Source of the DNA: Paraphysomonas bandaiensis
Taxonomy: Eukaryota > Protista > Chrysophyceae
Assembly: GCA_965644295.1 (NCBI GenBank)
Contig: CBFFRP010000453.1
Coordinates: 1-21,279, forward strand
DNA: 21,279 bases
Reading direction: 5' to 3'
Position numbers and translations under genes: made by a program. The notes under the pieces were generated by a model that had not been told where the DNA came from, did no database searches, and saw only the letters and a list, made by a program, of their open reading frames with translations. Shown here in pieces: positions 1,450-21,279 of the stretch; the stretch's first letter is position 1; each line of letters starts with the position of its first letter.

Positions 1450-4400
1450 CTAAATGCCTAAGTCGTTCAGGGTAAAATTTATGGAATTCAAGAGATTCTC
1501 GAGATCACGCCTCGGCTGCCCGTGGTCCACACAGCTCTGTATGACAGTACCCTAGAGCACGACAAACACACATCAGAGACAGAATCGCAGTACGTCACAC
1601 ATAAATAACAGTAATTAAACTTAGCGTATACGAATAGAAACAGGACTTTAGTTGAGGATGCAAACTACCCCACACTGACCAACAGATAACATACCATTCG
1701 TTTTTTAGCCAGTTGAATTTCTTGCAGCACTGGTTTGATGATAACCGATCGTGTGACGCCATTATCAATATAAAGCTAGAATATTACGAATTGTAAGCAC
1801 CAGAAGAAGTACGCACAATGTCAATCTCATTCATGCATTAAAATACAGGGCATACTTTCCCATACCAATGCACACATGTTTATTGGGTACGGGCTACTTT
1901 TTGGATTTACTACCTTAATCATTGCACTAAACTGAGGCTTCGATTCGATACAATTTTCAACAGCTGTATTTAGCACAGTCAAAATCCTTTCTGGTTTCAC
2001 AAATTGTTGTTTCTTTAGCCCATTTCGAGCAGCTTCTGGGATCAACACCTCTTGTCCATTTAGCGCAGTTGCAGATACATCATTGGGTCCATTATGAGGT
2101 GGATTAGGTACAATATCGCCACGGTACACGGGAATATCATCACCTGACAATCATGTTACCACGTATAGTACGAATTCTAAACTGTAGCAATTACACATTC
2201 CCCAATAGACGCACAATATAACACAAGTCATGTTTAAAATGTACATCAGTGAGCCACAACAAAGTACGTGAGACAATAGGACATTTGCACAAGGCACTCA
2301 CCAATAAAAGCTGTCACTTTGGCGAGGAAACCTTCTAATGGGCCGAGCAAAAAGTGAAGAGCGCTAAACTTCAACGACTGACACGAAGTCTTGAGAACTT
2401 CGTCCATGTGTTTGCGAATATCCAGCTGAGACTCCTGCATACCTGTATACAACGAGATATCATTTCCAGCAGGTACTCAAGAGGGAAGGTAGACAACAAC
2501 ACACATTGTGATAAGCGCAAAAAAGTCGTACGGAATGTGATATTACAATGCCAGAGAAACTTACCAGGTAGGCCGTCCCGAGCCATCTGCAGTAATGAAT
2601 TCCCACCATCAAATCGCAGCAAACTTCTAGAGTTCCCCATAAACGCCGACAATGCAGTGCTTGTTGGTTTAAAATCAAGGTGCTTAGTAATAGTCATGAG
2701 ATTCATGTCAAAGGGCATAAGCTGTTCTCTAAGGATAAGTAGATGGCGAACCAGGAACAGGTCTCCGTGAATTTGAGTTTTCCACCTTGAAGAAATCGAT
2801 GTGTTAGGGTATTCAACATGCAGTATACAAATATACAAGTGTCCTGTATCTCTCATAAGGACCAATGAAACATTGGAGTTCATAATGTAAGAGTACAACA
2901 TGCCGTGCTGGCCAATACCTGCGGACTCCAGCAGCACCTTTCTGAAGGCATTGCAAACAAGACGTTACAGCCCTTCTTGCAATATCTTCAAATACTGGCG
3001 TGCTAACTGCGCCATAGAGCTGAGAGAGAAGTGACAGGGTGTCTTTGAGCGGTGGAAACCAAGTAGATGAGAGGACATCTTCTGAGTCACTGGACGCCTT
3101 TTCAAGAATATCAGGGTATGCCAGCTGACTTGGCAAAGGATCAAACATTTGAATCTGATACAGCGGGGTTACATTAATCGCCATATCTTATGAGATTTAC
3201 CTGTTGTCTTATGCAAACCTCGGAGCAATACAGTAACCTTTCTCTCGCATCAGATACGGTACCTCGAAGGTTGGCTTCTAGTAAATCGAACACGCTCTTC
3301 GACAGTCTCGTAGCCTGTAACTGACTGGAAACATCCTGAGTAAGAGTCAGGATTACTCGGCAGAGGCTTTCCACAGAGGTTTCGCGGATAATGAGTGTCC
3401 TAAGTTGACCATTGATGAGACTAGATATTTCTGCTACAATTTGTGTAACTTCAGAATTTTCTTCGCCGTCAGGAATTTCGTCAGATTCAGAAATATCAGA
3501 CGTGTGTCTCTTTAAGACGGACTGTGACTGGGAGCTATCGTTACTACTATGTTTTGGAGAGTTTATCACAGCTCCGCCACTAGGTTTCCTAAAGAGAGAG
3601 ACATACAACTGCTGCTCCAGTTGAGCAGCCCGGAAAATAAGACCATACGCGCTGCGTATAGAGCTACAGAGTGCAGATGTCGATGAACTTTCCCCTGCGT
3701 CATGCCCTGATCCTACCTTATGCCTTAACGCATCTCCTGCAACCCCCCACGAGGAGTCTTTAATTACTGGCAACAAGAGCTCACACCGTAACGCTGCATA
3801 TGCCTTAAGAACTTCACTCAATGCGGTCCCACCAAACTCCCCTCCGTCTTGGCGGTGCGCATAATCCGACGACGACAAGGCGGTTTTCCCCGAGTTCAAA
3901 CGACGTCGCCACTCTGTCTCCAGCGCACCGTTTTCATGAGAAAACTCACTGCAACGCAGCATATCACATAGTTCTCGCATGCGGAACCCCAGCCCTCTAA
4001 ATTTGGTGTACAGATACATGGACTCCAAAGGAGTGTGAGAAGTTGGATCACTTGTTCCTGCGTGGTACAAGACACAAAGTAAACATATAGCAGAAAAGGG
4101 GTTAATACTGCGAGATAATACGGCTTTTGACAAAGATTTCATCCATCCATACGCAAATTGCAAATAGTTGCATTATCCGAACAGAGATATATATATATAA
4201 CACGTATATCTATCTCCATATGTATACACTTAAAACTGAATAAATACCATGTACTACTATGTTTACTATTTCCCTTACCTGTGTTCTTCTTGGCATCCCT
4301 AACAGCCTGGTCCTCTCTACATGCTCTTGCTGCGCCTTCCATTAGTTCTCCCATTGCCTTTGCAGTCATGCTATCTGCCCGCCTTTGCAGTTGCCATAAC

Positions 4401-5351
4401 CAGGTCATATACTTGTCGGCATCCTTGATATCGGGGTGGGCATGTAGACATCGTATCGCATGAGCAGTGCGTGTCAGAATGTCTTTAAAAGCTGCACTGC
4501 GAGGATCTACGTGCTGCTGGTGCGACGGAACCGATACTGGCCGACCAGCAGCGTCGACAGGAATGCCAAGGGCACTTGCAACGGCCTCAACCTCATTGAA
4601 AGGTGTAATTATCTCTTTCAGCTTCTCAGTGATCATTGCCAGTGAATGCTACAGGAAGTCAACAAGAGGTCAAGTCAAATTATAAATGCATAAAAATATC
4701 AACAACACGTTACATCACATACGGCTAGATATTCATATATAGACACGGTATATCAATTATCTACCAGTTCATCACTAGCATCACTGTTACGCCAAACACA
4801 ATACACTCTCTACATATCCACCATACAACTCACATACTATACCATACTACACCATATATCATACATCCTACATCATACTGTACTGCATTACACATAATAC
4901 TATCCACGCACTATACAGAATGTTATACATCACACAAAGCCCCCCATAAATGCATACACCCTTTTATATCCCATCATAAGACATCAACCCATATCACACC
5001 ATCAATTCTAATCCTCTAATATCTTACCTGTTGTTCCAATAGAGCTTCACAGTTATTCATTAATACATTTGTACGTCCAGTAATCTCCTTATGACTATCA
5101 CCCACTTCATCTAATATCCCTAATATATCATCTAATCTACATATAAATTCACTACATGATGATTCTACTGATGTTAACGATGTATATAATGAGTTATATT
5201 CATGAGTTGATTGGATAGATATACGGTTAGATCCTATAGATGGAGATGTAGGGGGAGATGAGGCATATGAGGGGGATAGAAGAGTGTCCAGGGCTTGGAG
5301 GTGGGTGGATAGTGTAGAGGAAGGAAGGGATGTGTCCCAGAGAGATGACAT
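1450..5351 (-). CDS. COG3: Conserved oligomeric Golgi complex subunit 3 (COG3/Sec34), 9 exons, ~853 aa
   Basis: Exons (minus): 5351-5028, 4648-4279, 4057-3201, 3154-2919, 2785-2565, 2442-2302, 2143-1914, 1775-1695, 1551-1450. All introns are GT..AG with matching phases, and the total of 2562 nt is 854 codons ending in TAG. COG3-typical motifs: NCEALLEQQ...ITEKLKEIITPFNEVE, HPDIKDADKY, LYTKFR, DARERLLYCSEVCIRQQI..FDP...LAYPDIL, TWFPPLKDTLSLLSQLY, HGDLFLVRHLLILREQLMPFD, LYIDNGVTRSVIIKPV. Confidence 0.93.
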
Positions 5352-5628
5352 GAGTGTGTATGGTAGATGAAATAGATGAGATACTTAATACTAACAACAC
5401 TGTGACAACATCACATAAAATATGCATGTATGTATGTATGTATGTATGTATGTATGTATGTATGTATGTATGTATGTATGTATGTATGTATGTATGTATG
5501 TATGTATGTATGTATGTATGTATGTATGTATGTATGTATGTATGTATGTATGTAGGTATGTATGTAGGTTTGTATGTATGTATGTATGTATGTATGTATG
5601 TATGTATGTATGTATGTATGTATGTATG

Positions 5629-5660
<32 letters not shown>

Positions 5661-5814
5661 TGTATGTATGTATGTATGTATGTATGTATGTATGTATGTA
5701 TGTATGTATGTATGTATGTATGTATGTATGTATGTATGTATGTATGTATGTATGTATGTATGTATGTATGTATGTATGTATGTATGTATGTATGTATGTA
5801 TGTATGTATGTATG

Positions 5815-5848
<34 letters not shown>

Positions 5849-6628
5849 TGTATGTATGTATGTATGTATGTATGTATGTATGTATGTATGTATGTATGTA
5901 TGTATGTATGTATGTATGTATGTATGTATGTATGGTATGTATGTATGTATGTATGTATGTATGTATGTATGTATGTATGTATGTATGTATGTATGTATGT
6001 ATGTATGTATGTATGTATGTATGTATGTATGTATGTATGTATGTATGTATGTATGTATGTATGTATGTATGTATGTATGTATGTATGTATGTATGTATGT
6101 ATGTATGTATGTATGTATGTATGTATGTATGTATGTATGTATGTATGTATGTATGTATGTATGTATGTATGTATGTATGTATGTATGTATGTATGTATGT
6201 ATGTATGTATGTATGTATGTATGTATGTATGTATGTATGTATGTATGTATGTATGTATGTATGTATGTATGTATGTATGTATGTATGTATGTATGTATGT
6301 ATGTATGTATGTATGTATGTATGTATGTATGTATGTATGTATGTATGTATGTATGTAGTATGGTATACATATGACTATCTCTCAGCATATGTATGTATGT
6401 CTATCTCTGTGTATGATCTTCACACTCTCTACTCTACTCTACCATACTATCATCCCCATCTCACTCCTCTCATCTTCCTCCTCCTACACCATATACATAC
6501 ATATCTCCCTCTCATTCATCATATATACAAACTCAATTCTATTAAAACACAGAGATATTCAGAGGGCCTTATTAAGACCTCAATGATCTTAATGGGATAT
6601 ATATATATATATATCATATAATCATAAC
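5352..6628. promoter_or_regulatory. Divergent (bidirectional) promoter region between COG3 and the PH-kinase gene
   Basis: Lies between the head-to-head ATGs at 5351 (-) and 6629 (+). Function is inferred from position only. Confidence 0.55.
5421..6357. repeat. Long (TATG)n/(CATA)n tetranucleotide array, ~935 bp, ~230 units
   Basis: Nearly perfect array with interruptions near 5425, 5555-5570 (TAGG, TTTG), 5630, 5818 and 5934. It produces the spurious MYVC/YIHT ORFs. Confidence 0.99.
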
Positions 6629-9600
6629 ATGTCCGCATGGGATAGTTTTATGACAGGTACGGGTTACATGTCACCCGGATTACATACAAAAGGTGATAAA
6701 GATATAAAGAAAACATCCAGTTTAACAGATATTGATACTATACTTGATAATGGACATCCAATAGATCATATAGAAGGGACACAAGAGGACATTGAGGGGA
6801 ATGTAATACATGGAGTTACACAAGAAAGAATTGCAAATATGTTTCAAAGAACTTATTATACTGAACATGAAAAATTATCACGTGGACAACCTGCAGAGCA
6901 TCCCATATTGAATGCAGATATACGACATGAGGATAGTGAAGTATTTATCACAGGTGAATTGCTTCATGCAGATCAATCGGAGAACCCCAAAACATGGGAT
7001 GATTATTTTGATATTCTAGTGGAACAGTTGCATGATCCTGAAAAGAAAGTTGCAACTCCCCTGGCTATGTCACCCGAAGCCTTGTCCACTATACCTGAGG
7101 AACGTTCTCCTTACCCCGAAGATGATGAGGCACAAACCGACCCCCAACTACCATCATTTGTTCCAGCACGTCAGGAGCAGGGCACCTCTGGTCATCCCTT
7201 CAATACTTCTGTGGGCGCCACAGGCATAGGCAAAATCGATAAAGAGCACTCTGCGAAAGGTGGAAGTTTGTTCGGTAATATGGACTGGAACTCAGGGACA
7301 GCAGAGGGTGCTACTAATGAAGACATGTTTGTTATACCAGAGGACGCCGACGATGACTTTGTTGTCGGCCTTCTAGATCCACAGAACACTCCAGGTGATT
7401 TAAAATTTGAAGGCTGGGTTGTAGTGTCATTCGCTCGTATATCTCTCTCGATGTAGTGTACTTGTGTTTGGTTTCTGATATATATGAACAGGAACATCTC
7501 CACCGGAAGCTCTTGGAAAAATTCCTGACCAAATGCCTCATGCAAGTGTGCAGACAGACACAGTACCTCGCCCAGTACCGACGTTAATCTCTGTATCTGC
7601 GAAGAGCTACTTAGGTACCCATGTCATGTGTGTTGGAATGAACTCATATTTATTGCATTTCTCTGGTATCGAGCTTGTGGGGTGTTGTATGGGCGTTTGT
7701 GTTTTTGTTTACATGTACATCGTGTTATTTTATACGTCTACAGGTGATGAGCTGAGCCACCATCAAGGTGGCGTATTTTCCAAGGACATGTTTTCGCGTG
7801 TTCCTGACTCCATGAAGCGTGTCCATTCCATGAGCAAGCTTGACAGAGCAGCGGGTACTGGTGCACCGACTACTCGTCGCCCATGTTTGCTACCGATGCC
7901 AGGTTACGTGGACCCCACTGCTGTTTCGTCTGACACACCGCTAGATCTCTCAACTTTGCTGCAATCTATTCCGAACGAGGGGTGGATTTTGCCATACATC
8001 ATAGCAGGGGCAGTACTGTTGTCTGAGACAGATAAAACGTCAAAGAAGTCAGCGACAAAGTTCTCGAATGTGGCATTCAGAGATCGATCGGAGTTAAGAA
8101 ATAGGAAATTGGTGTCTAGTATGGACGATATGCAAATGCTTGCGAGTCGTCGAAAACAGAGCACTTCCGGAAGAACTCTTAGACGAGATATATCCATCGA
8201 GGAATTGAAAGATGGTACTGGGACCTGTACATCAGGCCGGCCTCGCACACGCAGCGATGATGAAATTGCATCCACTTCGACGCCTCCGCGGCTTCAATCG
8301 GTGGGTGGAGGGGGCACACGTATCGGAAGTCTGTTTCATATTGGTCGTCATGACGATGTCACACTTGATGATAGCCATTATCAACCATCGAAGGAAGAGA
8401 TAATAGAGCAAGAACAGGCATATTCCAAAATGGAGTCTCGGATGAATTCTCACGGAAGTCACCGAAGTTTGTTTCAATTGGGTCGACAAAAGGCAGAGAA
8501 ACCTAACGATTTAGACGATAGTCGCTATCGGTTGACTCCTGCAGAAGTGTCAGACCTGGATATTGCAAAGACTGATTATGTGCGACAGCTGTCAAATGCC
8601 AAGAGTCAAACGAATTCAAATAGTACTGCGAATTGTCCAACGAGTACGAACAAAGCCATGTACTCCGCAGACAAAGAGTGTTTACCTACATGTCGTTCTG
8701 GTACCGGTGATTTGCGAGATATGACAGGGTCGCACGCTGATGGTGAGGGGAAAGGTAAGCACGAAGAGCAATATTCAAGGGGTGCTTCATATCCTCGCAA
8801 ACACATCTTGGACGATTCATCTGTAGATACTTGTAGACACGACTCATCATCCAAACCTTATAAACTTGAGAAATCGACACAAAGTAATTACAAAAGTATA
8901 TTTAGTCGGAATAAGCCTAACAGAGACGATGAATTGGACGACAGTCATATTAGGGATAAGGATGATTACGAAGACTCCCAAGTGGTGAGCAAATCGCATC
9001 AAAACACGAGAGAATATGGATATCATTCTCGAGGTCTCTTTAGAAGAAAACCGAAAGACGATGATTTAGATGATAATGATACTAGGGAAAAAACAAGTGA
9101 TGCGGATGAACTTTGTATTTCAAAACATTCAGAAAAGAGTTCATATAAACGTGGAATATTTCGCCGGTCACAAAAAGAAAAAGAAGAACCCCATACAACT
9201 GGATCACCTGTCCAGGTGAGGGACTTGCGAGAAAACATCACTTCAATGAAGAGTTCGAGTACGGACAATTTTGCTACTGGAAACAATGACGGGCAGCAAC
9301 ATCCCGTGGGGCTTCTAGGAGGGTTGTTACAACGTATCCGCAGTCACGACGATCAATATAACTCTCCTGATGATAGTGTACATGGGGATTTAGTTCTTTC
9401 ACATGATAAAGATGGTGTGTATTTAACGAGTAAACCAGATCACACAACGCATTCTAAACATTCGGCCCCACCAACGGTGGCAAGTCTTTCCCCATCTAAT
9501 GATGATGAAATCATGATGGAGATCGGGAAACATTCTGAACTGCCGAAGTTCATGCAATTTCTATTTTTGTTTCCTAATTTTCATAGACTGGGTACGATAT

Positions 9601-11936
9601 TCGCCTGTAAGAATCCCCCGTGGGGTGAATGGGAAAGGCGACGGTTTTTCCTTTGGGACAACTATATTTTTGAGGCTCTTGCAGATGATGACGGTATGCC
9701 CATTGGGTATGCTAATTTGAGTGCTGCCAAGGTGGCAATACACAGGGATAAGAGAGTGCGAGGTAAGTTGTTAATAAGAAATTTATATTCCACTTGTGTG
9801 AATGTATATGGCAAGAGTTTAGTAAAGAGATTCTATTATAGGTTTGTTGTTATTGCAGTAAAGCTTAGACTTGATATTGTAATTGTGTTTTGTATTAGCA
9901 CAAGTATACTGTTGATAATATATATTAGCCGTTGTAAGTTTTTTATATTCAGGTCGAAGTGATGCAGGGCACCCCCAAGATCCCGATTATATGATACGAT
10001 TGCAGTATTACTGCTCAACAGATGTCGCCTCCCCGAAAGAGGAAATATTTCTCTGTAGTAAGAACCGCACCTACACTGACGAAGTATTTCAGAGACTAAT
10101 CTTGGCCTCGAAAATGACAGTCAAAGATGTGTATGCTTTCGAGGAGTCACGACCACCTCTTGGTATAGGTAAGGAGTTATGACTTGGTTTTTGAGTGTGT
10201 GCTGACGTTGATATATATGCATAGGTCGTTATGCCTTCGTACACCGGGCCGTGAACCGAAGACTTCGAGAGAAGATCGTTGCTAGCAGCTCTGATTCTGA
10301 TAGTGACGTTGCGCCGACGGGGCAGTCACCGTTGGCAAGGTAAGTCTATTTGTTAATGATTCTTTTTGTGGGATTGAATTTGCTGTGCATTTGAAGCAGT
10401 ACTATTTTCATGTTTCTTATTTCTATGTTGTCATAGATCGTCGTCATACTTTAGTCGAAGAAACTATGGTTCAGATAATAAGCTTGACCGGAATGCTCAT
10501 ATGCCCTATTCTGAGGGCGATCTTCTCTCCAATGAGAGCTTGACAGGTTTAAATTCCATGGCAGGTGCGTCCACTGATATCTATTTTACACTTTGATGCA
10601 GTAGCGTAGCGTTAAAACATGATCATATGCTTTCAATGTAGTTTACGTTTTTTTTCGCGACGATGTATATACAGGTCAATGTGCCTTGAAACTTATAAAT
10701 AAGCGTGAGTTCTGGTCTCAAGTTAATAGTGGCAAAGAGCGGAAAGATACCCTTGTACGAGAAGTGCTAGCGCAGAGTCAACTCATAAACGCGGTGATAT
10801 CAGCAGGCCAAGAGTCAATAGATGATGTTGATGAGGTGACTTTGTCTGAAATGGAGCTGCCCGTTGTACAGCTGAATGGTATCATGGAGACAAGGTAAAC
10901 TCATGCTCCCATTTATACTGCTTGAACTCTTCTCTATTGACACGGTTTTATGTTACCGTGTATGTTCCACGTTGATTATTGTGTACTACATGCGCGACAG
11001 AAGATGGTTGATCCTAACACTATTTTCAGAGAGAACTTTGTGATTGATATGGAGCTTATGAAGTCTAATAATCTTTTCGACAAGCTATCTGAAGAGGGTG
11101 CCTTCAAGGAGAAACATGTCAAGCACATTGCTATCCAGCTCGTACAAGCTGTTGCACTCTGTCAGGCAAACCATATCGCCCATCGAGATATCAAACTATC
11201 TAACATTACTTTCCCTGAACGAATGAACGAGAACTTACTGTTGTCTCGTGCAAAGCACCCACCCATGCAGATAAAACTAGCAGACTTCGGAATGGCCGGA
11301 TTTTTAGAAAAAGATGGCTGCCTCAGAGGGCGGTGCGGCACTCCAGGGTATGTAGCGCCGGAGATATTTCGATCAGGAGTGCGCGAAGGGTATTCATTGA
11401 ATGTAGACATGTTTTCGGTAAGTAATGCGTGTACTATACCCACCTCAACGATATGCAGACACCTAAGGATATTGTACTATCTTAAATATGTATAATGCTC
11501 TGACCTACTGTATATTACACTGTGACTTGCGTATATACAGATATCTCGCTAGGGATTCTTCATTTATATACTATCTTATAATGTTTCGCGCTATTTTATA
11601 TCTACAGATACATTGTACCTGACGATATACTGTGTATAGGTTGGTGTATGTCTCTACAGTCTCTTGTGCGGATATGAGCCGTTTCAAGGAGAAACTATTC
11701 AAGACATTATAAATGCCAACAAATCTCTCCTATTTACTTTTGATTCACCAGAATGGAGCCGAGTAAGCGACGAGGCGATAGACTTTGTGTATCGCGCTAT
11801 GTCACCATCTGCTAGAGACCGACTTACCGTTCATGAGGCCTTGGACCACCCCTGGATGAATCACTATGCGGGTACCATAAACTACCCTCCTAAGTTCAAG
11901 CATACACGGCAGAATAGGGGATGTGTGGTTTCATAA
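6629..11936 (+). CDS. PH-domain-containing CAMK-group Ser/Thr kinase with long disordered N-terminus and C-terminal CaaX, 9 exons, ~1423 aa
   Basis: Exons: 6629-7394, 7492-7614, 7744-9762, 9953-10168, 10225-10339, 10437-10564, 10675-10894, 11030-11417, 11640-11936. All are GT..AG and phase-consistent (4272 nt). Kinase motifs: LGIGRYAFV (Gly loop, split by an intron), CALK, VRE (alphaC), HRDIKLSN, LADFG, RCGTPGYVAPE, VDMFSVG, LCGYEPF, EALDHPW. PH-like segment LGTIFACKNPPWGEWERRRFFLWDNYIFE...PIGYANL...EIFLCS..TDEVFQRLILA. Ends CVVS*. Linkage of exons 1-2 to the rest is less certain than the 3' part. Confidence 0.85.
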
Positions 11937-13286: not shown

Positions 13287-13805
13287 TTCTTCATATCATA
13301 CCATACAGATTGATGATTGGCTATACAGATCTCTGACGGTTGATTTTTTTTCAATGACGAATGTATTACGGGTTACATGATCTTCCGGGAATCCCCCGTA
13401 CATGAACTGGTAATTCCGCATATCAAAATGATTTTTCTGACGTTATTTTATTTAGCCAATTACATCGATTTATAAGAATATGATTGGTAGAAAAATTGTT
13501 ATTTGATTATCAAATTTTGTCAGATTGACATACGACAGTGGGATGATTTGTAAAATTTCATTCTTCAATTTTACATAAACAAAAAAATGTAGTGTGTTAT
13601 ATATATGAATTTGATATTCATTCAAAATTGTCGTAGAAAATAATAGAAAAAAAAAGTAAATTTAGCGAGTCAAGAATATGTCAGAAAGATTTCCAGAAAG
13701 TGTATATAGAATGAATGTTTATTATACACAATTCATAATTAAAGTGGGAGGAAAGTGATTGAATTGATATACTTTACTAAGTGAATTAAGACTATCTTGA
13801 ATTAT
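13287..13805. promoter_or_regulatory. AT-rich divergent intergenic region with three CCAAT/ATTGG boxes
   Basis: ATTGG at 13316-13320 and 13483-13487, CCAAT at 13456-13460, between head-to-head genes. Motifs this short could be chance. Confidence 0.3.
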
Positions 13806-16800
13806 ATGAGTGTTGAAATGGCATCTTTTGATGAAGAAAAAGCATGTGAATTATTACGTAAAAAACATCCTGAAAATGAAGTGATTTCATCTGAAGAATT
13901 AAACCAATACGCTAATTCTAATATACCATATGAAGATGTGATTGGTGCATTAAGTACTAATATATCTAATGGATTAACTTCAGATGAAGTAATACGTAGA
14001 TTACATCTATATGGTACAAATGAGTTAACCAAACCTAAACGTATTCCACTATGGTTATTATTTTTATCACAATTTGTTAATATTGTGATTATTATATTAA
14101 TGATTGCTGCTATTGTATCAATTCTTGTTGGTGAATTAGTTGAAGGTATTGCTGTATTTATTATTATTTTAATTACAGCATCTGTAGCAACATATACTGA
14201 ATATTCATCTGGGAATGCATTAGAAGCATTAGCATCCTTAACTGATCCACATTCACATGTATATCGTAATGGACAATTAGAAATGATATCAACATGTGAT
14301 ATTGTACCAGGTGATATTATTGTTTTATCACCAGGTGATTTAGTTCCTGCTGATATACGAATAATTGAATCACATCATGTGAAAGTGAATGAAATGATCT
14401 TAACGGGTGAATCAGCTGAAGTAAAGAAATCTGCTCATACAACACTTGAAGAAAATGAAAATAAATTAACTGCAGTGAATATGGTATATGGATCAACTAG
14501 TATGGTGGATGGAAAACTTACGGGTGTTGTCCTTTTAACGGGTATGAATACACGTGTGGGATCAATTGCTACTTTACTTAATCAAGGACCTGAGAATGAT
14601 AGCAGTGAGAATAAAGTACCACAAGAAATGCAATCTCGTATACATCGATTCAATAGTGAGATTCAAGAAAACCGAAGTTCTGAATCGGAAGAGTATGAGT
14701 CTGATGAAGAGAGAGATGATCATAAAAAGACTGAGAAGAAGACTTCGAGCTTCTCTGTGTCGTATGTCGTTAATGCCACCAAATGCTGCACGTCTATAAA
14801 GAAGTTCATGTCGAGTGTACAGCCGAAGCGAACTCCTTTACAAGATGAAATCCATCATTTGGGTCTCATTATGACTGGCTTTGCGATTACTGGTGCTGTG
14901 TTGGTGATAATTATCGGTATTTTACGTAACTTTAGAGACCCGAATAATGAAGACAATCCTCCTTGGCTCCAGAGTTTGATGCTTGCGGTTAGTATGGCTG
15001 TGTCTGCGATTCCTGAGGGACTTCCACTTGTTGTTGTCATGTGCTTGGCACTAGGAACACACGCTATGTCAGAGCGAAATGTTTTGATTCGCCGTTTGCC
15101 CGCTGTCGAGACTCTGGGGTCTGCTTCTGTTGTATGCAGTGATAAGACTGGAACCCTTACCACTGGGAAAATGACCGCCACCCAGATGTGGACGTACGAG
15201 AGACTCTACAGCATTAGTGGGAGTGGATATGATCCGACGCAAGGCCATGTGATGGACTCAAAAGATAACCAAGTGACAAAGCAGTCTCATTCTCATGATG
15301 TTGCACTGGCTGCCACAATGGGAATAATTAACTTATGCAATGACTCGGATATACGTTACAATGAAGGCAAGTGGGTTCCTATTGGTACATCCACCGAAGC
15401 GGCCCTGGTTGTAGCCTCCCAAAAATTCGGTATCGCCACAGGAGAGTACAGAAAGTCAAACCCTCAGGAGTGTGTTGTTCCCTTTAGCTCCAAGTTCAAA
15501 ATGATGGCCTCAGTGCATAGACTCCAAGAGAGCGATTCAAATATTTTTATACCTGCCCCGAACTCATCTTCAGACAAAGCAAATGACCAAAACAACTTGG
15601 TTGTAATGTCCAAAGGGGCCCCACTTGTCCTATTAAATAAGTGTAAATACGTGATTCGTGACGAGCATGATGGGTCTGGTCCTGTTGTCACTGAACTCAC
15701 TGCTGACATGCGGAGCGATATCGTCAAGGAATGTGACCGCCTATCTGATCTTGGTTTACGTGTTCTTGCGGCCTGCTATCGTCGTTCTACGACTATAGCT
15801 GTTGATGAGGATGACGAGTCTGTCCCCACTGAAGATAAGCTCGATGTGCTCGTGTCCAATATGGTATTCTCAGGCCTAATAGGTATGATGGACCCCCCTC
15901 GACCAGGGGTAAAGAAAGCTGTTTTACGAGCAAAGGAAGGTGGTGTTCGGACTGTTATGATCACCGGAGATTACTTAAAAACTGCTGTAGCAATCGCTAA
16001 GATGATTAACATAGTTGGGCCTACGATGGATGAAACTGAGTGTGCCGTCGACTGCTCTGTACTCCGACCCAATGGTGACTATTTGAGTGCTCGGGAAATC
16101 GATGAAATAACATGGCACACATTTGTCTTTGCTCGGGCACGACCAGAGGACAAAATTCAAATTGTGAAATCTTTTCAGCGACAAGGCAAAGTATGCGGAA
16201 TGACAGGAGATGGGGTAAATGATGCCCCTGCCTTGAGGCAAGCAAATATTGGTATTGCGATGGGTATAGCAGGCTCGGAAGTAGCCAAAGCAGCCTCTGA
16301 TATGATTTTAACTGACGATAAATTTTCTTCGATTGTTGGTGCTATTGAAATGGGTCGAACTATATACAGCAATCTGCGCAAATTTGTCATGTATTTTATT
16401 GGCACTAACTGGTCTCAAGTTCTTGTGATCTTATTGTCTCTTCTTATCGGCATGCCGAATCCGTTGGAACCGCTGCAGATTCTGTTTATCAATTTGATCA
16501 CTGACGGAATGCCGGCCGTTGCACTCAGTATTGAGGATCCAGAAGGAGACGTCATGCGACAACCTCCTAGAAAGAAAAATTCCAGAATTCTCAGCGGAGT
16601 GATCGCTGTCGGCATTCTTGGACACGCCACTGTACTTGTCGTTTTTATGTTGCTTACATTCTTCATGGGCTTGTGGTGGAATATTGGTGTGGTGCTTATC
16701 GACAATATGTACAATGATGATGGCGATCTCATCACACAGTGTAATCAGTTGACGTCAAGTGGAACTTGGGTGGAAGTGGAGTCAGGTGACTGTGTAAAAG

Positions 16801-17234
16801 ATGGACTAAAGATTGCCCGGACAATGGTGTTCCTTATTATTACTTTTGCAGAGTGTTTGCGACCTCTGACTGCTAGATCTTTCAGTTTGGCCATCCACAA
16901 TGATCCTTTCCGTAACACTGCAATGATCAAGGCCATTCTTTTCAGTATGTCTTGTACTTTCATTGTTGTATTTGTTCCCGTGGTTCAAGACATATTTCAC
17001 TTGACAGCACCGCGCTGGTTTGAATGGCTGATTATCATTGTTGGTGTCATTTTGACAGTTGTCAGTGATGAAATGCTTAAATCGAAACTGCGAAGCGAAA
17101 ATTTGAAGAACCGGCGGTGGGAGCAATTGTTTGGTGATATCAATAACATCACCATGGAGCTACGAAATGTGCGTAGTCATGTTAATCGTATTGAGTACGC
17201 TGCTGTACCAAACGGAGATGCTGGAGATGTATGA
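13806..17234 (+). CDS. Type II P-type cation-transporting ATPase, ATP4-like (putative Na+ efflux pump; Ca2+ not excluded), intronless, ~1142 aa
   Basis: PGD..PAD, TGES (14403), PEGLP, CSDKTGTLT (Asp at 15141), KGAP, GLRVLA, DPPR, MITGD, ARARPEDK and TGDGVNDAPAL are all present, with a 10-TM pattern. First in-frame ATG is 13806 (the ORF track starts at TTG 13797). The P-type call is secure; the subfamily call is from recalled motif similarity. Confidence 0.93.
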   Translation: MSVEMASFDEEKACELLRKKHPENEVISSEELNQYANSNIPYEDVIGALSTNISNGLTSDEVIRRLHLYGTNELTKPKRIPLWLLFLSQFVNIVIIILMIAAIVSILVGELVEGIAVFIIILITASVATYTEYSSGNALEALASLTDPHSHVYRNGQLEMISTCDIVPGDIIVLSPGDLVPADIRIIESHHVKVNEMILTGESAEVKKSAHTTLEENENKLTAVNMVYGSTSMVDGKLTGVVLLTGMNTRVGSIATLLNQGPENDSSENKVPQEMQSRIHRFNSEIQENRSSESEEYESDEERDDHKKTEKKTSSFSVSYVVNATKCCTSIKKFMSSVQPKRTPLQDEIHHLGLIMTGFAITGAVLVIIIGILRNFRDPNNEDNPPWLQSLMLAVSMAVSAIPEGLPLVVVMCLALGTHAMSERNVLIRRLPAVETLGSASVVCSDKTGTLTTGKMTATQMWTYERLYSISGSGYDPTQGHVMDSKDNQVTKQSHSHDVALAATMGIINLCNDSDIRYNEGKWVPIGTSTEAALVVASQKFGIATGEYRKSNPQECVVPFSSKFKMMASVHRLQESDSNIFIPAPNSSSDKANDQNNLVVMSKGAPLVLLNKCKYVIRDEHDGSGPVVTELTADMRSDIVKECDRLSDLGLRVLAACYRRSTTIAVDEDDESVPTEDKLDVLVSNMVFSGLIGMMDPPRPGVKKAVLRAKEGGVRTVMITGDYLKTAVAIAKMINIVGPTMDETECAVDCSVLRPNGDYLSAREIDEITWHTFVFARARPEDKIQIVKSFQRQGKVCGMTGDGVNDAPALRQANIGIAMGIAGSEVAKAASDMILTDDKFSSIVGAIEMGRTIYSNLRKFVMYFIGTNWSQVLVILLSLLIGMPNPLEPLQILFINLITDGMPAVALSIEDPEGDVMRQPPRKKNSRILSGVIAVGILGHATVLVVFMLLTFFMGLWWNIGVVLIDNMYNDDGDLITQCNQLTSSGTWVEVESGDCVKDGLKIARTMVFLIITFAECLRPLTARSFSLAIHNDPFRNTAMIKAILFSMSCTFIVVFVPVVQDIFHLTAPRWFEWLIIIVGVILTVVSDEMLKSKLRSENLKNRRWEQLFGDINNITMELRNVRSHVNRIEYAAVPNGDAGDV

Positions 17235-18653
17235 GTACCATGACGTGCAATTGTTACCATATGTACTTGTTCGTGCTAGCAAGTGTGTTATATGGAAGAA
17301 TTAGTTTAAGAAGAGTTTTAATTAATAGCAGGCAGTAACGAGTGTACAACGTTGTAATAATGACATTCGATTATTTTGCTACGGTTAACTGTACAACAGA
17401 GTGAGTACATGCATGGATATGTAGTGATTTAGTGACGGCAGTTGTTCTAGTGTGCTGTGTACTCTATGTTTCGATGTTAAACTAGTACTGCCAGGTGAAT
17501 ATATTAAACCTTGTGCGCTTAGAGGAGGGTACGACCGGTCATGTAGCCGAACGCAACGCATCAGATCTTTACCTGGCGAACCGAGAGGAGCGCTCAATGC
17601 ACCGTACTTTGGAGCAGAAGCACGACGTTACGTCAACAGGAAAAATGCTACTGCAGGTGCGTATAAATGCAACCCGTTTAACAGAAGGTGATTTCGAGGA
17701 TGAAGAACAAGAAGTGTCAGACCATGAATCAGATTAACATTGTTCACTCCAACATCATATACAATTTAAGAGGTATTACTTCTGAGGTAAGTAGCTACAT
17801 GTAACACATATATTTAATTAAATTTAAGAGGTATACTCAGGTATACAGCAAAAATACTTTTACGACATCAACTATAATAATGGACAGCATGTCTACAAGC
17901 TAGCGGCAAGTTACTTGAGGCACTTAGCAGCAGGTTGATATTATTATGTATATTTATGTTATATTATTAAGTATATTAGTGTTTGTTTTATATATATTAT
18001 CTACAGTAACTTCGTCAAAGAAAAGGACTAAAAACAGCAATGGGTAATAGTGACAAATCCTACAACAGAATGAGTGAACCAATGCGTGCTCTTATCTGAG
18101 AATGTTATGATCGGATGACACGTCGACGTAATATTCGTGGGGTGTCGTACAAACAATAACTTTATGCTAATGACTGAATAGCTTGAATTGTGTAGTCGTT
18201 GACTTTATTACTGTAAAACTGAAGTGTTATGTAAGTAAGTAATAAATAATATTTTCCACACTGTGATAAATATCTTCATTTAGCTAGCTAGTATGTCTAG
18301 CCATTCAACTAGCCACTATATTGGTACAGGTTTATAACGCCTATTGCTAAATATAAAGACTTTCAGTTATAGATCCATTTATAATTACTCTGGGATGAAT
18401 GCTCTCGAATGGGGTGGTTATATAAATGCTGCGTGAAAATTATAAAATCTATTCGTATTACACTGGGCTGATTGCACTTTCCTATAACACAATTCATATG
18501 ACACCCTTTTCAAGACAAAATTATATGTGGAGAGTTTATACATCACGATGGGTATTTCAGACTATTACAGATTATGTGTTTGAATACATTTCTCCCTAAC
18601 CAATGCGATCCAACATATATATATCATAACTGCTCATCGCTCACAACATAATA

Positions 18654-21275
18654 TTAGATAGTGATCCCTAATTCTGAAATGATCTCCGTCACAGCGTTTA
18701 TTACCTCCTCACGAATTCCCACACGAATAGTAGCTAAGTATGCTTTCAACAACTCCGTCCTACGAAGCCGCTGGGACTCCTCATAGTCCGCCCGACGGCT
18801 AAATACATTAGGTCTACGATTATTGTATCTACAATTGGCAGTGTGTTGGTGGGCATCGTCGCCACAGTCGTGTAGGCAGTATCCACAGAAACCACAGTTG
18901 CAATTCGGACAATAAAGAGCTAGACAATGGCCGTAGTCTAAGCTATCTGGAGTGAACAGCCACGCACATCTCGGACATCTGAGGGACAAAATACAATTCC
19001 TAATGTAGTTCCCGTGAGTTTGTATCTCTCTGTCCTTCTCAGATAAGGCAGCCAGGCGGATCTTCTCCAGCCGCTGAGCCTCTTCGTAATGGCAAATTTC
19101 TCGCCAAGCAACAAGCTCACGCTCACTGCGTTGATATAAACGGTGAACCTCTTCTGTTAACAGTCGTACCACTTTATGGGAATCAAAGGGACCCACATTA
19201 CATCCGTGAGAATGGTAGGGACACATGATCCGGAACTCGCCACCGTAATCTGTTCGTTCTTCCCAAACCTCGTTAAACTCAGGGGCTCTCATGTTAGGCC
19301 AAGGCTTCTGTAACTCTGTGCTGTTAGCTACTTGCCTGAACTCCCTCAAAATATCTCCTTTGTTGCCTCGAAGGTAAAGGTCTCGTTGCCCAGATATGTC
19401 CCAAATGTGAACTAGTCGACGTCGGCCCCTCTCTGACGTGGCCTCAACTTTGACATAAGCGTTAAGACAGCTTTCACAAGTAAAGTGCCGAGCCTCTCCT
19501 TTGCACTGCAACCCCTGACACATATCTACCTCTTCATCACACAAACAACATACTCGCATGCGAGCTTGTTGTTCCTTCTCCAGTCTCTCCCGCTCCTGCG
19601 CTATCTCCCGCTCCTGACAAACGATTCTTTCCCGGAGGGTTTGAATATCATTGGCTAAATCTTGTATGGCGAAGAAAGACTTCTGTAGTGCATCTCGGGA
19701 AGAAAGTCGTTCCTCCGGATTTTGACACAGAACCTCCCTAAGTCGGTTCCTCAAATCATTGAGTTCTCCATCACACTTAGGAATCTTGTGCACTAGAAAT
19801 TTATCCATACTGCCCCGATTACACTCGAGGCCAAAGATGTGAAGTACACACACACCAAAGGAGTACATATCGGAAGCATAAGATGGAGAATTACCAATGA
19901 ATATCTCAGGAGCCATAAAATCATGAGACCCTCTCATTTTCCCGCCCAAAGTAGACTGGTCTCGACTCAAGGAGTCGATAGAAATATCAAAATCCGTTAA
20001 CATAGCGGTTCCTCTATCCGAAATAAGGATATTGTCTGGTTTCACATCACAGTGTACCACATTATTGCCGTGCAAATGAGCCAACCCATTCAGCACATCG
20101 TTGCATAATAGACGCTTGGACAATATGCTTAACCCATGCTTTTGTCTCTCCAGGTACAGCGCTAAGTTTCCATTTATGTAGAAAGGCATTTCTATATACG
20201 CTTTACCCTTCTCAAGGAATACAGCAGTGATGTCCGCTATGTACGGACTTTGACAATGGGTAGCTAATATGCGAGCTTCCCGCCAGAAGCTTTTCTGTTG
20301 GTCCTCATTGCTGCATGAAAAAGCTTTCAAAAATACGTTCCTCTTAGCAAAGCAACCCCTCATAACCAAGTTTCGGCTGTTGCTCTCGACTAAATCAGAG
20401 TAATCACCAATCGAACGGTCAATTATCAGTAACCCCTTAGCTATGTCAGGCAAATCTTTCGGGTCAAAACCAATCCCAGGACACAAGATTGGCATCTCGG
20501 GAAAATGAGTCAAAGCTATTCGAGAGAGAGCAGCTCGCTCTTTGCACAGTGCGTTACGCTTGAGCTGAAGATCTACTTTCGCATTTTTCATATCTTCCTC
20601 GAGTTGTTGTTGTCTCGTTCTGTCACATTTATCACCCTCAAGTTCCTGAATTTCAATAGCAAACTTGCACTGCGCAATACGCTTCTGAGCATTTCTAATA
20701 TCGTCCAATAGGCCCGAGAAGATTTCTCCTTTGGGAGGACCATCAACCCAAACCTCCATTTCCTCGAGCTGGTTACGTATTCTGGCCCTTTGTTGCACAA
20801 TTTCGGAAGCTTTATGACACCAGTATGTGGTAAACCGCGCGACTGCTACACATGCTTCCCTGGTATCTCGCCTTATATCTGGGTAAAAACGCATAGGGTA
20901 CTGCCAGTGATCCCTCTCAATACGAAGACACTCATCCAATTCCTTCGAACAAACTTCCAGATTATGCATACTCATGCTATTTTCATCAACTAACATCTCC
21001 CCAACACATCCCAAACATTTATGAAATGCCGCAAGTGCTCTCTCTGTCTCCTCAGCGGGGGAGCGCGAGCACTCACCCACCCATTCTCCCATCTTATCTT
21101 CGAAATCCGACAGAAGCGTCATCAGCTCAGTAGACGATATATGACGGGTTTCTCCAATGCATTCTACAGCTTCAATCACCTCATTTCCTGACCATCTGCA
21201 CCCATCGTAGACTTGCTTCAGAACCTCTAACCACTTTTCCACGGGAGCTGCGAGGATTGTCCGCATTACAGACAC
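18654..21275 (-). CDS. Coiled coil + STK31-like protein kinase + RING1/Rcat (RBR-like) E3 ligase fusion; 5' end probably outside the window
   Basis: Uninterrupted 873-aa ORF with no in-frame stop up to the window edge. Kinase ~20410-19671: FLK, RE, HCDVKPDN, TDFD, GSHDFMAPE, SDMYSFG, ERLS. RING-like 19550-19200: CCLC..QC..HFTCESC...CP....C. Rcat/IBR-fold-like 18977-18831: CPRC..GHCLALYCPNCNCGFCGYC..DAHQH..C. Confidence 0.88.
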   Translation of the reverse strand: MSVMRTILAAPVEKWLEVLKQVYDGCRWSGNEVIEAVECIGETRHISSTELMTLLSDFEDKMGEWVGECSRSPAEETERALAAFHKCLGCVGEMLVDENSMSMHNLEVCSKELDECLRIERDHWQYPMRFYPDIRRDTREACVAVARFTTYWCHKASEIVQQRARIRNQLEEMEVWVDGPPKGEIFSGLLDDIRNAQKRIAQCKFAIEIQELEGDKCDRTRQQQLEEDMKNAKVDLQLKRNALCKERAALSRIALTHFPEMPILCPGIGFDPKDLPDIAKGLLIIDRSIGDYSDLVESNSRNLVMRGCFAKRNVFLKAFSCSNEDQQKSFWREARILATHCQSPYIADITAVFLEKGKAYIEMPFYINGNLALYLERQKHGLSILSKRLLCNDVLNGLAHLHGNNVVHCDVKPDNILISDRGTAMLTDFDISIDSLSRDQSTLGGKMRGSHDFMAPEIFIGNSPSYASDMYSFGVCVLHIFGLECNRGSMDKFLVHKIPKCDGELNDLRNRLREVLCQNPEERLSSRDALQKSFFAIQDLANDIQTLRERIVCQEREIAQERERLEKEQQARMRVCCLCDEEVDMCQGLQCKGEARHFTCESCLNAYVKVEATSERGRRRLVHIWDISGQRDLYLRGNKGDILREFRQVANSTELQKPWPNMRAPEFNEVWEERTDYGGEFRIMCPYHSHGCNVGPFDSHKVVRLLTEEVHRLYQRSERELVAWREICHYEEAQRLEKIRLAALSEKDREIQTHGNYIRNCILSLRCPRCAWLFTPDSLDYGHCLALYCPNCNCGFCGYCLHDCGDDAHQHTANCRYNNRRPNVFSRRADYEESQRLRRTELLKAYLATIRVGIREEVINAVTEIISELGITI

Positions 21276-21279
21276 TAGG

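Follow-up and report, generated by a model that had tools for sequence, protein, structure and literature searches.

A protist Ser/Thr kinase fused to an RBR-type RING1 and an Rcat-like zinc domain, with helices where an IBR would be

The DNA analyzed here (the window) is a stretch of 21,279 nucleotides from a marine protist, and carries on its reverse strand an open reading frame that is still open at the window end (21279), so that the N-terminus of the encoded protein is cut off there (table 1). The order of its parts is a helical N-region and a Ser/Thr kinase, then a short coiled coil and a RING, followed by two long helices that lead to a single zinc domain and, last, a helical tail. PolyA RNA contigs extend over positions 18650–21279 without joints and run on past 21278, unlike the flank at 18000–18550, for which no polyA RNA contig coverage was observed. 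The variants within the ORF split into 22 synonymous versus 18 nonsynonymous, and none of them falls at a conserved Cys/His position. This restriction of the RNA contigs to the ORF, in combination with the variant split and the sparing of the conserved Cys/His residues, indicates a genuine gene that evolves under constraint. For the N-terminal 289 residues we found no recognizable relatives, with no Pfam family at an E-value below 0.08 and Atlas feature scores of at most 0.82; this variable N-terminus is likely a sensing or targeting part.

Table 1. Features of the kinase-ligase ORF (window positions; aa, residues of the incomplete ORF).
Feature	Positions	Strand	Basis or remark
Whole ORF, N-terminus incomplete	18654..21275	-	873 codons, no introns in span
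N-terminal region (aa 1-290), incomplete, no recognizable family	20406..21275	-	Pfam and Atlas
Ser/Thr protein kinase domain (aa 314-535)	19671..20336	-	Pfam Pkinase 4e-30; motif table, 35 related kinases
Short charged helix/coiled coil, E/R/Q-rich (aa 540-573)	19557..19658	-	Sequence only
RBR-type RING1 (aa 576-692)	19200..19550	-	Ligand conservation and VIA-align
Insertion of ~62 aa in RING1, between ligands 6 and 7	19236..19421	-	phmmer domain coordinates
Helical linker, two long helices where an IBR would be	18987..19181	-	AF2 secondary structure
Rcat-like two-zinc domain (aa 767-815)	18831..18977	-	Conservation in 162 copies; PDB profile matches
Cys784 codon, candidate catalytic (thioester) Cys	18924..18926	-	Alignment with CUL9 C2249
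His809 codon in the conserved D-A-H-x-H motif, candidate partner of Cys784	18849..18851	-	Conservation
Conserved C-terminal helical tail (aa 828-869)	18669..18794	-	AF2 and alignment

A first-pass annotation, made from the sequence alone, had described a kinase domain followed by an E/R/Q-rich coiled coil, and both were recovered, the latter as a helix. Judged by its motifs, the kinase is atypical but has kept its catalytic residues. It is of the non-RD type (HCD), carries DFD instead of DFG, and lacks the glycine-rich loop, as no GxGxxG was found in the loop region, which reads SNSRNLVMRGCF and holds no Gly motif. The catalytic residues of eukaryotic protein kinases (ePKs), namely K317, E333, D410, N415, D428, and the APE at 455–457, are all present and were found conserved in 28–35 of the 35 related kinases in the motif table, 31 of which share the replacement of DFG by DFD. 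Among the best 60 solved kinases, the nearest relatives were MAP2K-like, S6K, PKC, and STE20 kinases; PINK1 was not among these 60, and a specific PINK1 relationship was rejected on the nearest solved relatives.

Downstream of the coiled coil, we observed a cross-braced C3HC4 RING1 of the RBR type and its following helix, in agreement with the RING1 identity that had been proposed. Its ligands follow the pattern C576-x2-C579-x11-C591-x5-H597-x2-C600-x2-C603-x81-C685-x6-C692, and all eight ligand columns (C576, C579, C591, H597, C600, C603, C685, and C692) were conserved at 91–100% in an alignment of 93 sequences. Superposition with VIA-align placed this domain closest to RNF216 RING1 (residues 512–601; Z 8.0, rmsd 2.6 over 90 residues), followed by the RING1 domains of Parkin (Z 7.5–7.6), RNF144A (Z 6.9), and ARIH2 (Z 6.6), with 90–97 residues superposed in each case at an rmsd of 2.5–3.4; Parkin RING1 was also matched by the family profile. 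The insertion between ligands 6 and 7 is common only to a small subgroup (P0003, P0006, P0013, P0017, and P0029) and was modeled as a small β/α unit with a pLDDT of ~95.

The absence of an IBR and the presence of a helical linker, both claimed previously, hold as well. Between C692 and C767 only helices were found, and neither this protein nor the family consensus has a Cys/His cluster of IBR size there. Residues 699–763 are Cys/His-poor and helical in the AF2 model (H130–136, H139–174, and H177–193 in fragment numbering), and no conserved Cys or His was found in this stretch across the family.

The first-pass annotation had considered the last zinc domain to be Rcat-like, which the profile and fold comparisons sustain. 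Searches with the single sequence of residues 570–873 returned nothing from Pfam or the PDB, and the zinc domain of the window itself had no Pfam match. The family profile, however, scored Parkin Rcat at 16.8 bits versus 5.4 bits for Parkin IBR, and the PDB profile search gave CUL9 Rcat 28.3 bits (E = 1.2e-5) versus a score below zero for CUL9 IBR. Other Rcat domains matched by profile were Parkin RING2, HHARI RING2, ARIH2, and HOIP, along with the isolated Rcat structures 1wd2, 2lwr, 9c5e, and 2m9y. An AF2 model built from the 93-sequence alignment reached a pLDDT of 95.3 and a pTM of 0.78, versus a pLDDT of 35 for the single sequence, and the AlphaFold and Foldseek comparison suggested in the first-pass annotation yielded nearly exclusively RBR ligases among its best 50 matches; in both the PDB and the Foldseek searches, the E-values were modest (1e-5 to 2e-3). 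For the C-terminal part of this model (helix, zinc domain, and tail), VIA-align found a match in the Rcat-helix region of RNF216 (residues 652–771; Z 5.5–6.1). RNF216/TRIAD3 is thereby the best structural match for both halves of the module, and in both proteins the Rcat is followed by a helix, although RNF216 has an IBR and identity over the C-terminal Rcat-helix superposition is ~10%. When 85 family zinc domains were searched against Pfam (E ≤ 10), the RNF216-specific models PF26200 (Rcat_RNF216) and PF26191 (RING-HC_RBR_RNF216) were absent among the 25 families most often matched, and the likeness to the RNF216/TRIAD3 subfamily is one of fold only.

The zinc domain follows the pattern C767-x2-C770-x13-C784-x4-C789-x2-C792-x4-C797-x2-C800...C804...H809-x-H811-x3-C815, a layout that had been read correctly except for one spacing, since 12 residues rather than 11 separate CPRC from HCLALYC. 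From conservation across 162 copies, we propose that C767, C770, C789, and C792 would coordinate the first zinc, and C797, C800, H811, and C815 the second. The seven ligand Cys show no or almost no variation, and the only substitute seen for His811 is Cys (four of 162 copies); these eight conserved ligands fit two zinc sites. Two further residues are surplus to these eight. Cys784, whose codon had been located correctly, is kept in 153 of the 162 copies, stands at the exact catalytic spacing (C-x4-C), and aligns in the profile match with CUL9 C2249, a demonstrated catalytic Cys (PMC11257990); with the zinc ligation as proposed, the domain is a linear two-zinc Rcat/RING2 with a Cys at the catalytic position. 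His809 is kept in 156 of the copies, and was lost in five of the eight copies that had lost Cys784 versus one of the 153 with it (Fisher p = 4e-7), a co-loss that is seen in one clade and one independent duplicate copy and rests on only two or more independent events. Because both residues are extra, highly conserved, and tend to vanish together, this pattern suggests that Cys784 and His809 form a Cys-His catalytic pair. A third four-ligand zinc site made of C784, C794, C804, and H809 was rejected on conservation, as Ser, Ala, or Gly can stand in for C804 and C794 with C784 and H809 retained. The claim that the Cys occupies the catalytic position without the downstream His also stands: this protein has Ala at position 786, as do 98% of the 93 aligned modules and 154 of the 162 zinc-domain copies. 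Many RBRs, though not all, have this C-x-H His two residues downstream of the catalytic Cys. Within the C-terminal tail, R838 is 95% conserved.

Set against the known RBR ligases (Parkin, HHARI/ARIH1, ARIH2, CUL9, HOIP, and HOIL-1), the module shares a RING1 ending in CP-x(n)-C and followed by a helix, as well as a C-terminal linear two-zinc domain with a catalytic-spaced Cys (G/H-C-x4-C-x2-C-x4-C-x2-C). It differs from them in that two long helices, and no IBR, bridge RING1 and the Rcat-like domain, in lacking the C-x-H His, for which the D-A-H-x-H loop after the second CxxC is a candidate substitute, and in the conserved helical tail of its own family. The earlier comparison to a fused PINK1-Parkin pair is speculative and only loosely apt: a Ser/Thr kinase and an RBR-type ligase are indeed combined, in one pathway there and in one chain here, but this kinase is not PINK1-like and the ligase lacks Ubl, RING0, and REP, with no Pfam match to a ubiquitin-like or RING0 domain in the ORF.

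Together, these features make it somewhat probable, in our judgment, that the gene codes for a kinase joined to a minimal ubiquitin ligase module of RBR descent, with helices in place of the IBR. Three other readings were weighed against this one. The module could be a non-catalytic RBR remnant, in which RING1 and an IBR-type structural zinc domain act as an ordinary RING E3 (direct E2-to-substrate transfer) or as a scaffold and Cys784 is structural. The Pfam families matched by the members do carry the IBR name (IBR_1 in 81 of 85, IBR in 56 of 85), the zinc domain comes after the RING1-proximal helix, where classical RBRs have their IBR, and the C-x-H His is absent; yet Rcat far outscores IBR within the same target proteins, Cys784 has the catalytic spacing and the CUL9 alignment, and two zinc sites would not account for the conservation of Cys784 and His809, whose losses are mainly confined to one clade and to redundant tandem copies, which leaves this reading unlikely. 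Less likely again is a ubiquitin- or E2-binding regulatory device without ligase output, in which ubiquitin chains or a charged E2 would turn the kinase on, resulting in a ubiquitin-regulated kinase instead of a ligase under kinase control. The conservation of all RING1 zinc ligands and of the Cys-His pair exceeds what binding requires, and many members are short (130–400 aa) with no partner enzyme seen, some of them possibly fragments, even though the helix-Rcat-helix unit superposes on the part of RNF216 crystallized with ubiquitin and K63 di-ubiquitin (7m4m and 7m4n) and the module also terminates helicases and other enzymes, as would suit an adaptor.

That the last domain is instead a second cross-braced RING (C4C4/C3HC4-like) in a tandem-RING protein unrelated to Rcat appears very improbable, and was rejected on conservation. 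The RNF4 RING was the best PDB profile match by E-value (1.6e-7), but this entry is a fused tandem dimer of which each single domain reaches only ~5e-3; and although the spacing C792-x-C794-x2-C797-x2-C800 is compatible with RING ligands 3 to 6, such a reading would need C794 as a ligand, which is kept in 120 of the 162 copies and often Ala, and would leave the invariant C789 without a role. The structural matches in this region were the Rcat domains of RNF216 and Parkin, not RINGs.

Under the favored reading of a kinase-fused minimal ligase, RING1 would dock a ubiquitin-charged E2 and Cys784 would receive the ubiquitin as a thioester before its final transfer to the substrate. In classical RBRs, the C-x-H His serves as general base; here, His809 of the conserved D-C-G-x-D-A-H-x-H loop may have taken over this role, perhaps assisted by Asp807 or Asp803 from that loop. 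In known RBRs, the handling of ubiquitin involves the IBR, so a module without it might be incapable of transthiolation. The fused kinase would probably mark or select the substrate, or activate the ligase through autophosphorylation.

Related modules occur well beyond this gene and form a large conserved family, in which fusion to kinases is frequent. An exhaustive protein search revealed relatives in 1,725 clusters from several eukaryotic supergroups, with members in Thecamonas and Pythium among them, whereas word-index protein searches had returned 0, 1, and 3 matches. At E ≤ 1e-10, 788 relatives of the zinc module were found, which places the architecture far beyond chance. Most long members bear a kinase and others carry ZNFX1/UPF1-like helicases, while those looked up in public databases are labeled only as kinases or hypothetical proteins. 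The system had been put forward as a candidate for an undescribed one. The literature searched, which covers the field in part, yielded no account of an IBR-less RBR or of such a kinase fusion; the gene belongs to a widespread family of ~1,700 clusters.

A broader and more tentative possibility is that RING1-helix-Rcat constitutes an ancient, pan-eukaryotic, and unrecognized class of minimal transthiolating E3s, devoid of an IBR and with a relocated Cys-His(-Asp) active site, which was repeatedly recruited as the output module of sensor enzymes (two kinase subtypes, one of them carrying an IRAK/Pelle-like HRD-KSxN motif, ZNFX1-like helicases, and LRR or STAND proteins) and acts in protists as an effector of signaling or innate immunity. 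Three zinc domains are the defining feature of RBR ligases; if the proposal holds, this family would reveal the smallest unit capable of transthiolation, with RING1 and the Rcat-like domain kept, the IBR exchanged for helices, and the candidate catalytic His moved. The repeated fusions to kinases and ZNFX1-like helicases in several supergroups point to a shared circuitry that couples phosphorylation or RNA sensing to ubiquitylation and that model organisms have not revealed. The immunity or conflict role is speculative, being hinted at only by the partner domains of the relatives. In P0025, P0082, and five others, the RING1-Rcat unit lies at the C-terminus of ZNFX1/UPF1-like helicases, as a terminal transthiolating E3 module would, similarly to the RZ-finger E3 module in which the large NTPases ZNFX1 and RNF213 end; the RZ finger itself is of another kind, consisting of one small zinc motif, and the comparison is one of position, not of homology. 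Further partners in the relatives include kinases with an IRAK/Pelle-like HRD-KSxN catalytic-loop motif, LRR, and STAND NTPase.

The minus-strand ORF encoding the kinase-ligase reaches the window end with its frame open, so the N-terminus of its product is missing, and Pkinase (aa 314-535, E=4e-30) was the single domain that Pfam detected in it. Its C-terminal module (aa 570-873), searched as a separate piece, produced no match in Pfam or in the PDB sequence search. PolyA marine metatranscriptome contigs spanned 18650-21279 without joints and extended past 21278, and their 40 best-supported differences from the window (22 synonymous, 18 nonsynonymous) left the conserved Cys/His positions untouched; 18000-18550 had no polyA contig cover and was covered in a DNA run. 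This is a real gene, and apparently an expressed one. Every element described by the first-pass annotation was recovered in place, including the candidate catalytic Cys codon at 18926-18924, and the spacer following CPRC was corrected from 11 to 12 residues.

AlphaFold2 modelled the module with a mean pLDDT of 95.3 and pTM of 0.78 when given A1, the 93-sequence family alignment, and with a pLDDT of 35 when run without an alignment. Nearly all of the first 50 PDB matches retrieved by Foldseek were RBR ligases (Parkin, HHARI, RNF216, HOIP, ARIH2, and HOIL-1), in agreement with the class first proposed; whole-model E-values stayed weak (2.4e-3 at best) owing to the different domain arrangement. 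In VIA-align, model residues 2-160 superposed on the RBR RING1 and its helix (RNF216, Z 8.0, rmsd 2.6 over 90; Parkin, Z 7.5-7.6; RNF144A, Z 6.9; ARIH2, Z 6.6), and residues 174-298 on the RNF216 helix-Rcat-helix 652-771 (Z 5.5-6.1). Helices alone lie between the two zinc domains of this model, in which the IBR, as had been supposed, is truly absent.

An exhaustive HMMER search with aa 570-873 recovered 1,725 cluster representatives at a threshold of E<=1e-3, of which 788 also passed E<=1e-10; word-index protein searches recovered almost no relatives. Judged by sequence similarity, the module is a large family. Among the best 150 of the 1,725, which were the relatives examined, the RING halves were contiguous in most, so that the ~62-aa stretch at aa 619-680 represents an insertion in the RING, common to a small subgroup only. 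The A1 consensus comprises a RING, ~75 residues without conserved Cys/His, a zinc motif (I-L-T-L-K-C-P-R-C-x-x-A-F-x-D-F-x-G-C-F-A-L-T-C-x-R-C-x-C-G-F-C-A-W-C-L-x-D-C-G-x-D-A-H-x-H-V-x-x-C), and a conserved helical tail.

Across 162 zinc-domain copies, C767, C770, C789, C792, C797, C800, and C815 were invariant or nearly so, and H811 was His in 158 and Cys in 4, a swap typical of zinc ligands. These eight putative ligands fit two sequential zinc sites, resembling IBR and Rcat domains. Beyond the needs of two such sites, C784 (153/162) and H809 (156/162) were also conserved. A third four-ligand site was rejected, since C804 and C794, often Ser, Ala, or Gly and hence not obligate ligands, vary while C784 and H809 stay. 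H809 was missing in five of the eight copies without C784 and in 1 of the 153 with it (Fisher p=4e-7). Four of these double losses group in a single clade and the remaining one lies in an independent duplicated copy; with at least two independent events in the tree, the joint loss is suggestive rather than conclusive. Our reading is that C784 and H809 form a candidate catalytic pair, or a triad if D807 or D803 also takes part, in place of the classical C-x-H. The clade lacking both residues (P0006, P0013, P0017, and P0029, which carry the query's RING1 insertion) likely comprises pseudo-ligases; at least P0017 retains the kinase. Tandem double copies of the Rcat-like domain occur in P0005, P0024, P0085, P0088, P0079, and P0100, of which the first three have lost the candidate Cys from one copy.

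The module is clearly RBR-derived, and it differs from textbook RBR ligases in lacking the IBR and the C-x-H histidine and in having conserved motifs and a conserved tail of its own. The most likely reading, which we consider somewhat probable, is that a kinase is coupled to an active transthiolating ligase of RBR type that lacks the IBR. The identity of the last zinc domain bears on it. The family profile matched the CUL9 Rcat (28.3 bits, E=1.2e-5) and scored CUL9's own IBR below 0, gave the Parkin Rcat 16.8 bits vs 5.4 for its IBR, and also matched HHARI and Parkin in structures of the Rcat alone, and ARIH2 and HOIP in their Rcat regions, upholding an Rcat-like domain rather than a plain IBR. 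The proposed catalytic position gained support from the pairing of C784 with C2249, the CUL9 catalytic cysteine (PMC11257990); the classical histidine is absent, as noted at first. In single-sequence Pfam searches, IBR_1 was matched by 81 of the 85 family zinc domains, and the window's own copy had no match.

A plain RING E3 acting through a non-catalytic RING1-IBR remnant is, on these data, an unlikely alternative, and a kinase regulator that binds ubiquitin or an E2 a slightly less likely one. That the protein is a tandem-RING protein seems very improbable: RNF4, a fused tandem RING, tops the family-profile matches by E-value, but its single domains reach only ~5e-3 each and a RING reading of the last zinc domain conflicts with the conservation pattern. 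For the transthiolating ligase, the fused kinase might serve to select or prime substrates, or act as a gate on the ligase, and the unrecognised N-terminus could serve as a targeting or sensing part; the proposed PINK1-Parkin analogy is conceptual only. No published description of the IBR-less module or of its kinase fusion was found within a partial literature collection.

A kinase preceded the module in 29 of 49 long representatives scanned, and a UPF1/ZNFX1-like helicase accompanied it in seven; single cases carried an IBR plus RING, ubiquitin, a DEAD helicase, LRR, or a STAND NTPase. Two kinase subtypes were linked to the module: that of the window (H-[ACGS]-D, D-F-D, no glycine loop, all catalytic residues present), found in 34 proteins of the compared set, and one with HRD-[IV]-K-S-x-N...D-[CFY]-G. 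Named members belong to a cryptophyte, an oomycete, a choanoflagellate, two dinoflagellates, an apusomonad, and Paulinella, with Atlas clusters adding haptophytes, diatoms, and rotifers. Source labels, where given, went no further than 'hypothetical protein' or 'serine/threonine protein kinase', with a single exception that is evidently a mislabel.

The surroundings look eukaryotic. The genome has introns, given the split of the COG3 (conserved oligomeric Golgi subunit 3) gene over ORFs; unlike COG3, the kinase-ligase gene has none within the window. The second kinase ORF probably represents a single exon within a larger gene, and the microsatellite accounts for a GC-skew spike and a pile of overlapping ORFs at its position. 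In related strains, contigs from RNA as well as DNA part from the window at 18651, next to the stop codon; the 3' flank thus differs between strains. Word depth points to a repeated element lying immediately downstream of the gene.

Features located in the window, with strand and supporting details
Feature	Positions	Strand	Details
COG3 gene	2371-4636	-	split over at least 3 ORFs
(TATG)n microsatellite, near-perfect	5421-6362		236 copies, 98% matches
809-aa ORF	7533-9962	+	no Pfam family at E<=0.01
Second, partial kinase ORF	10950-11495	+	Pkinase profile positions 71-183, E=3e-27
P-type cation ATPase ORF	13797-17234	+	intronless, 1,145 aa; Cation_ATPase_N, E1-E2_ATPase, Cation_ATPase, Hydrolase, Cation_ATPase_C (Pfam)
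Repeated element	18220-18440		word depth ~8,000-10,000 in a DNA run vs ~100 nearby
Kinase-ligase ORF	18654..21275	-	873 codons; frame open to window end
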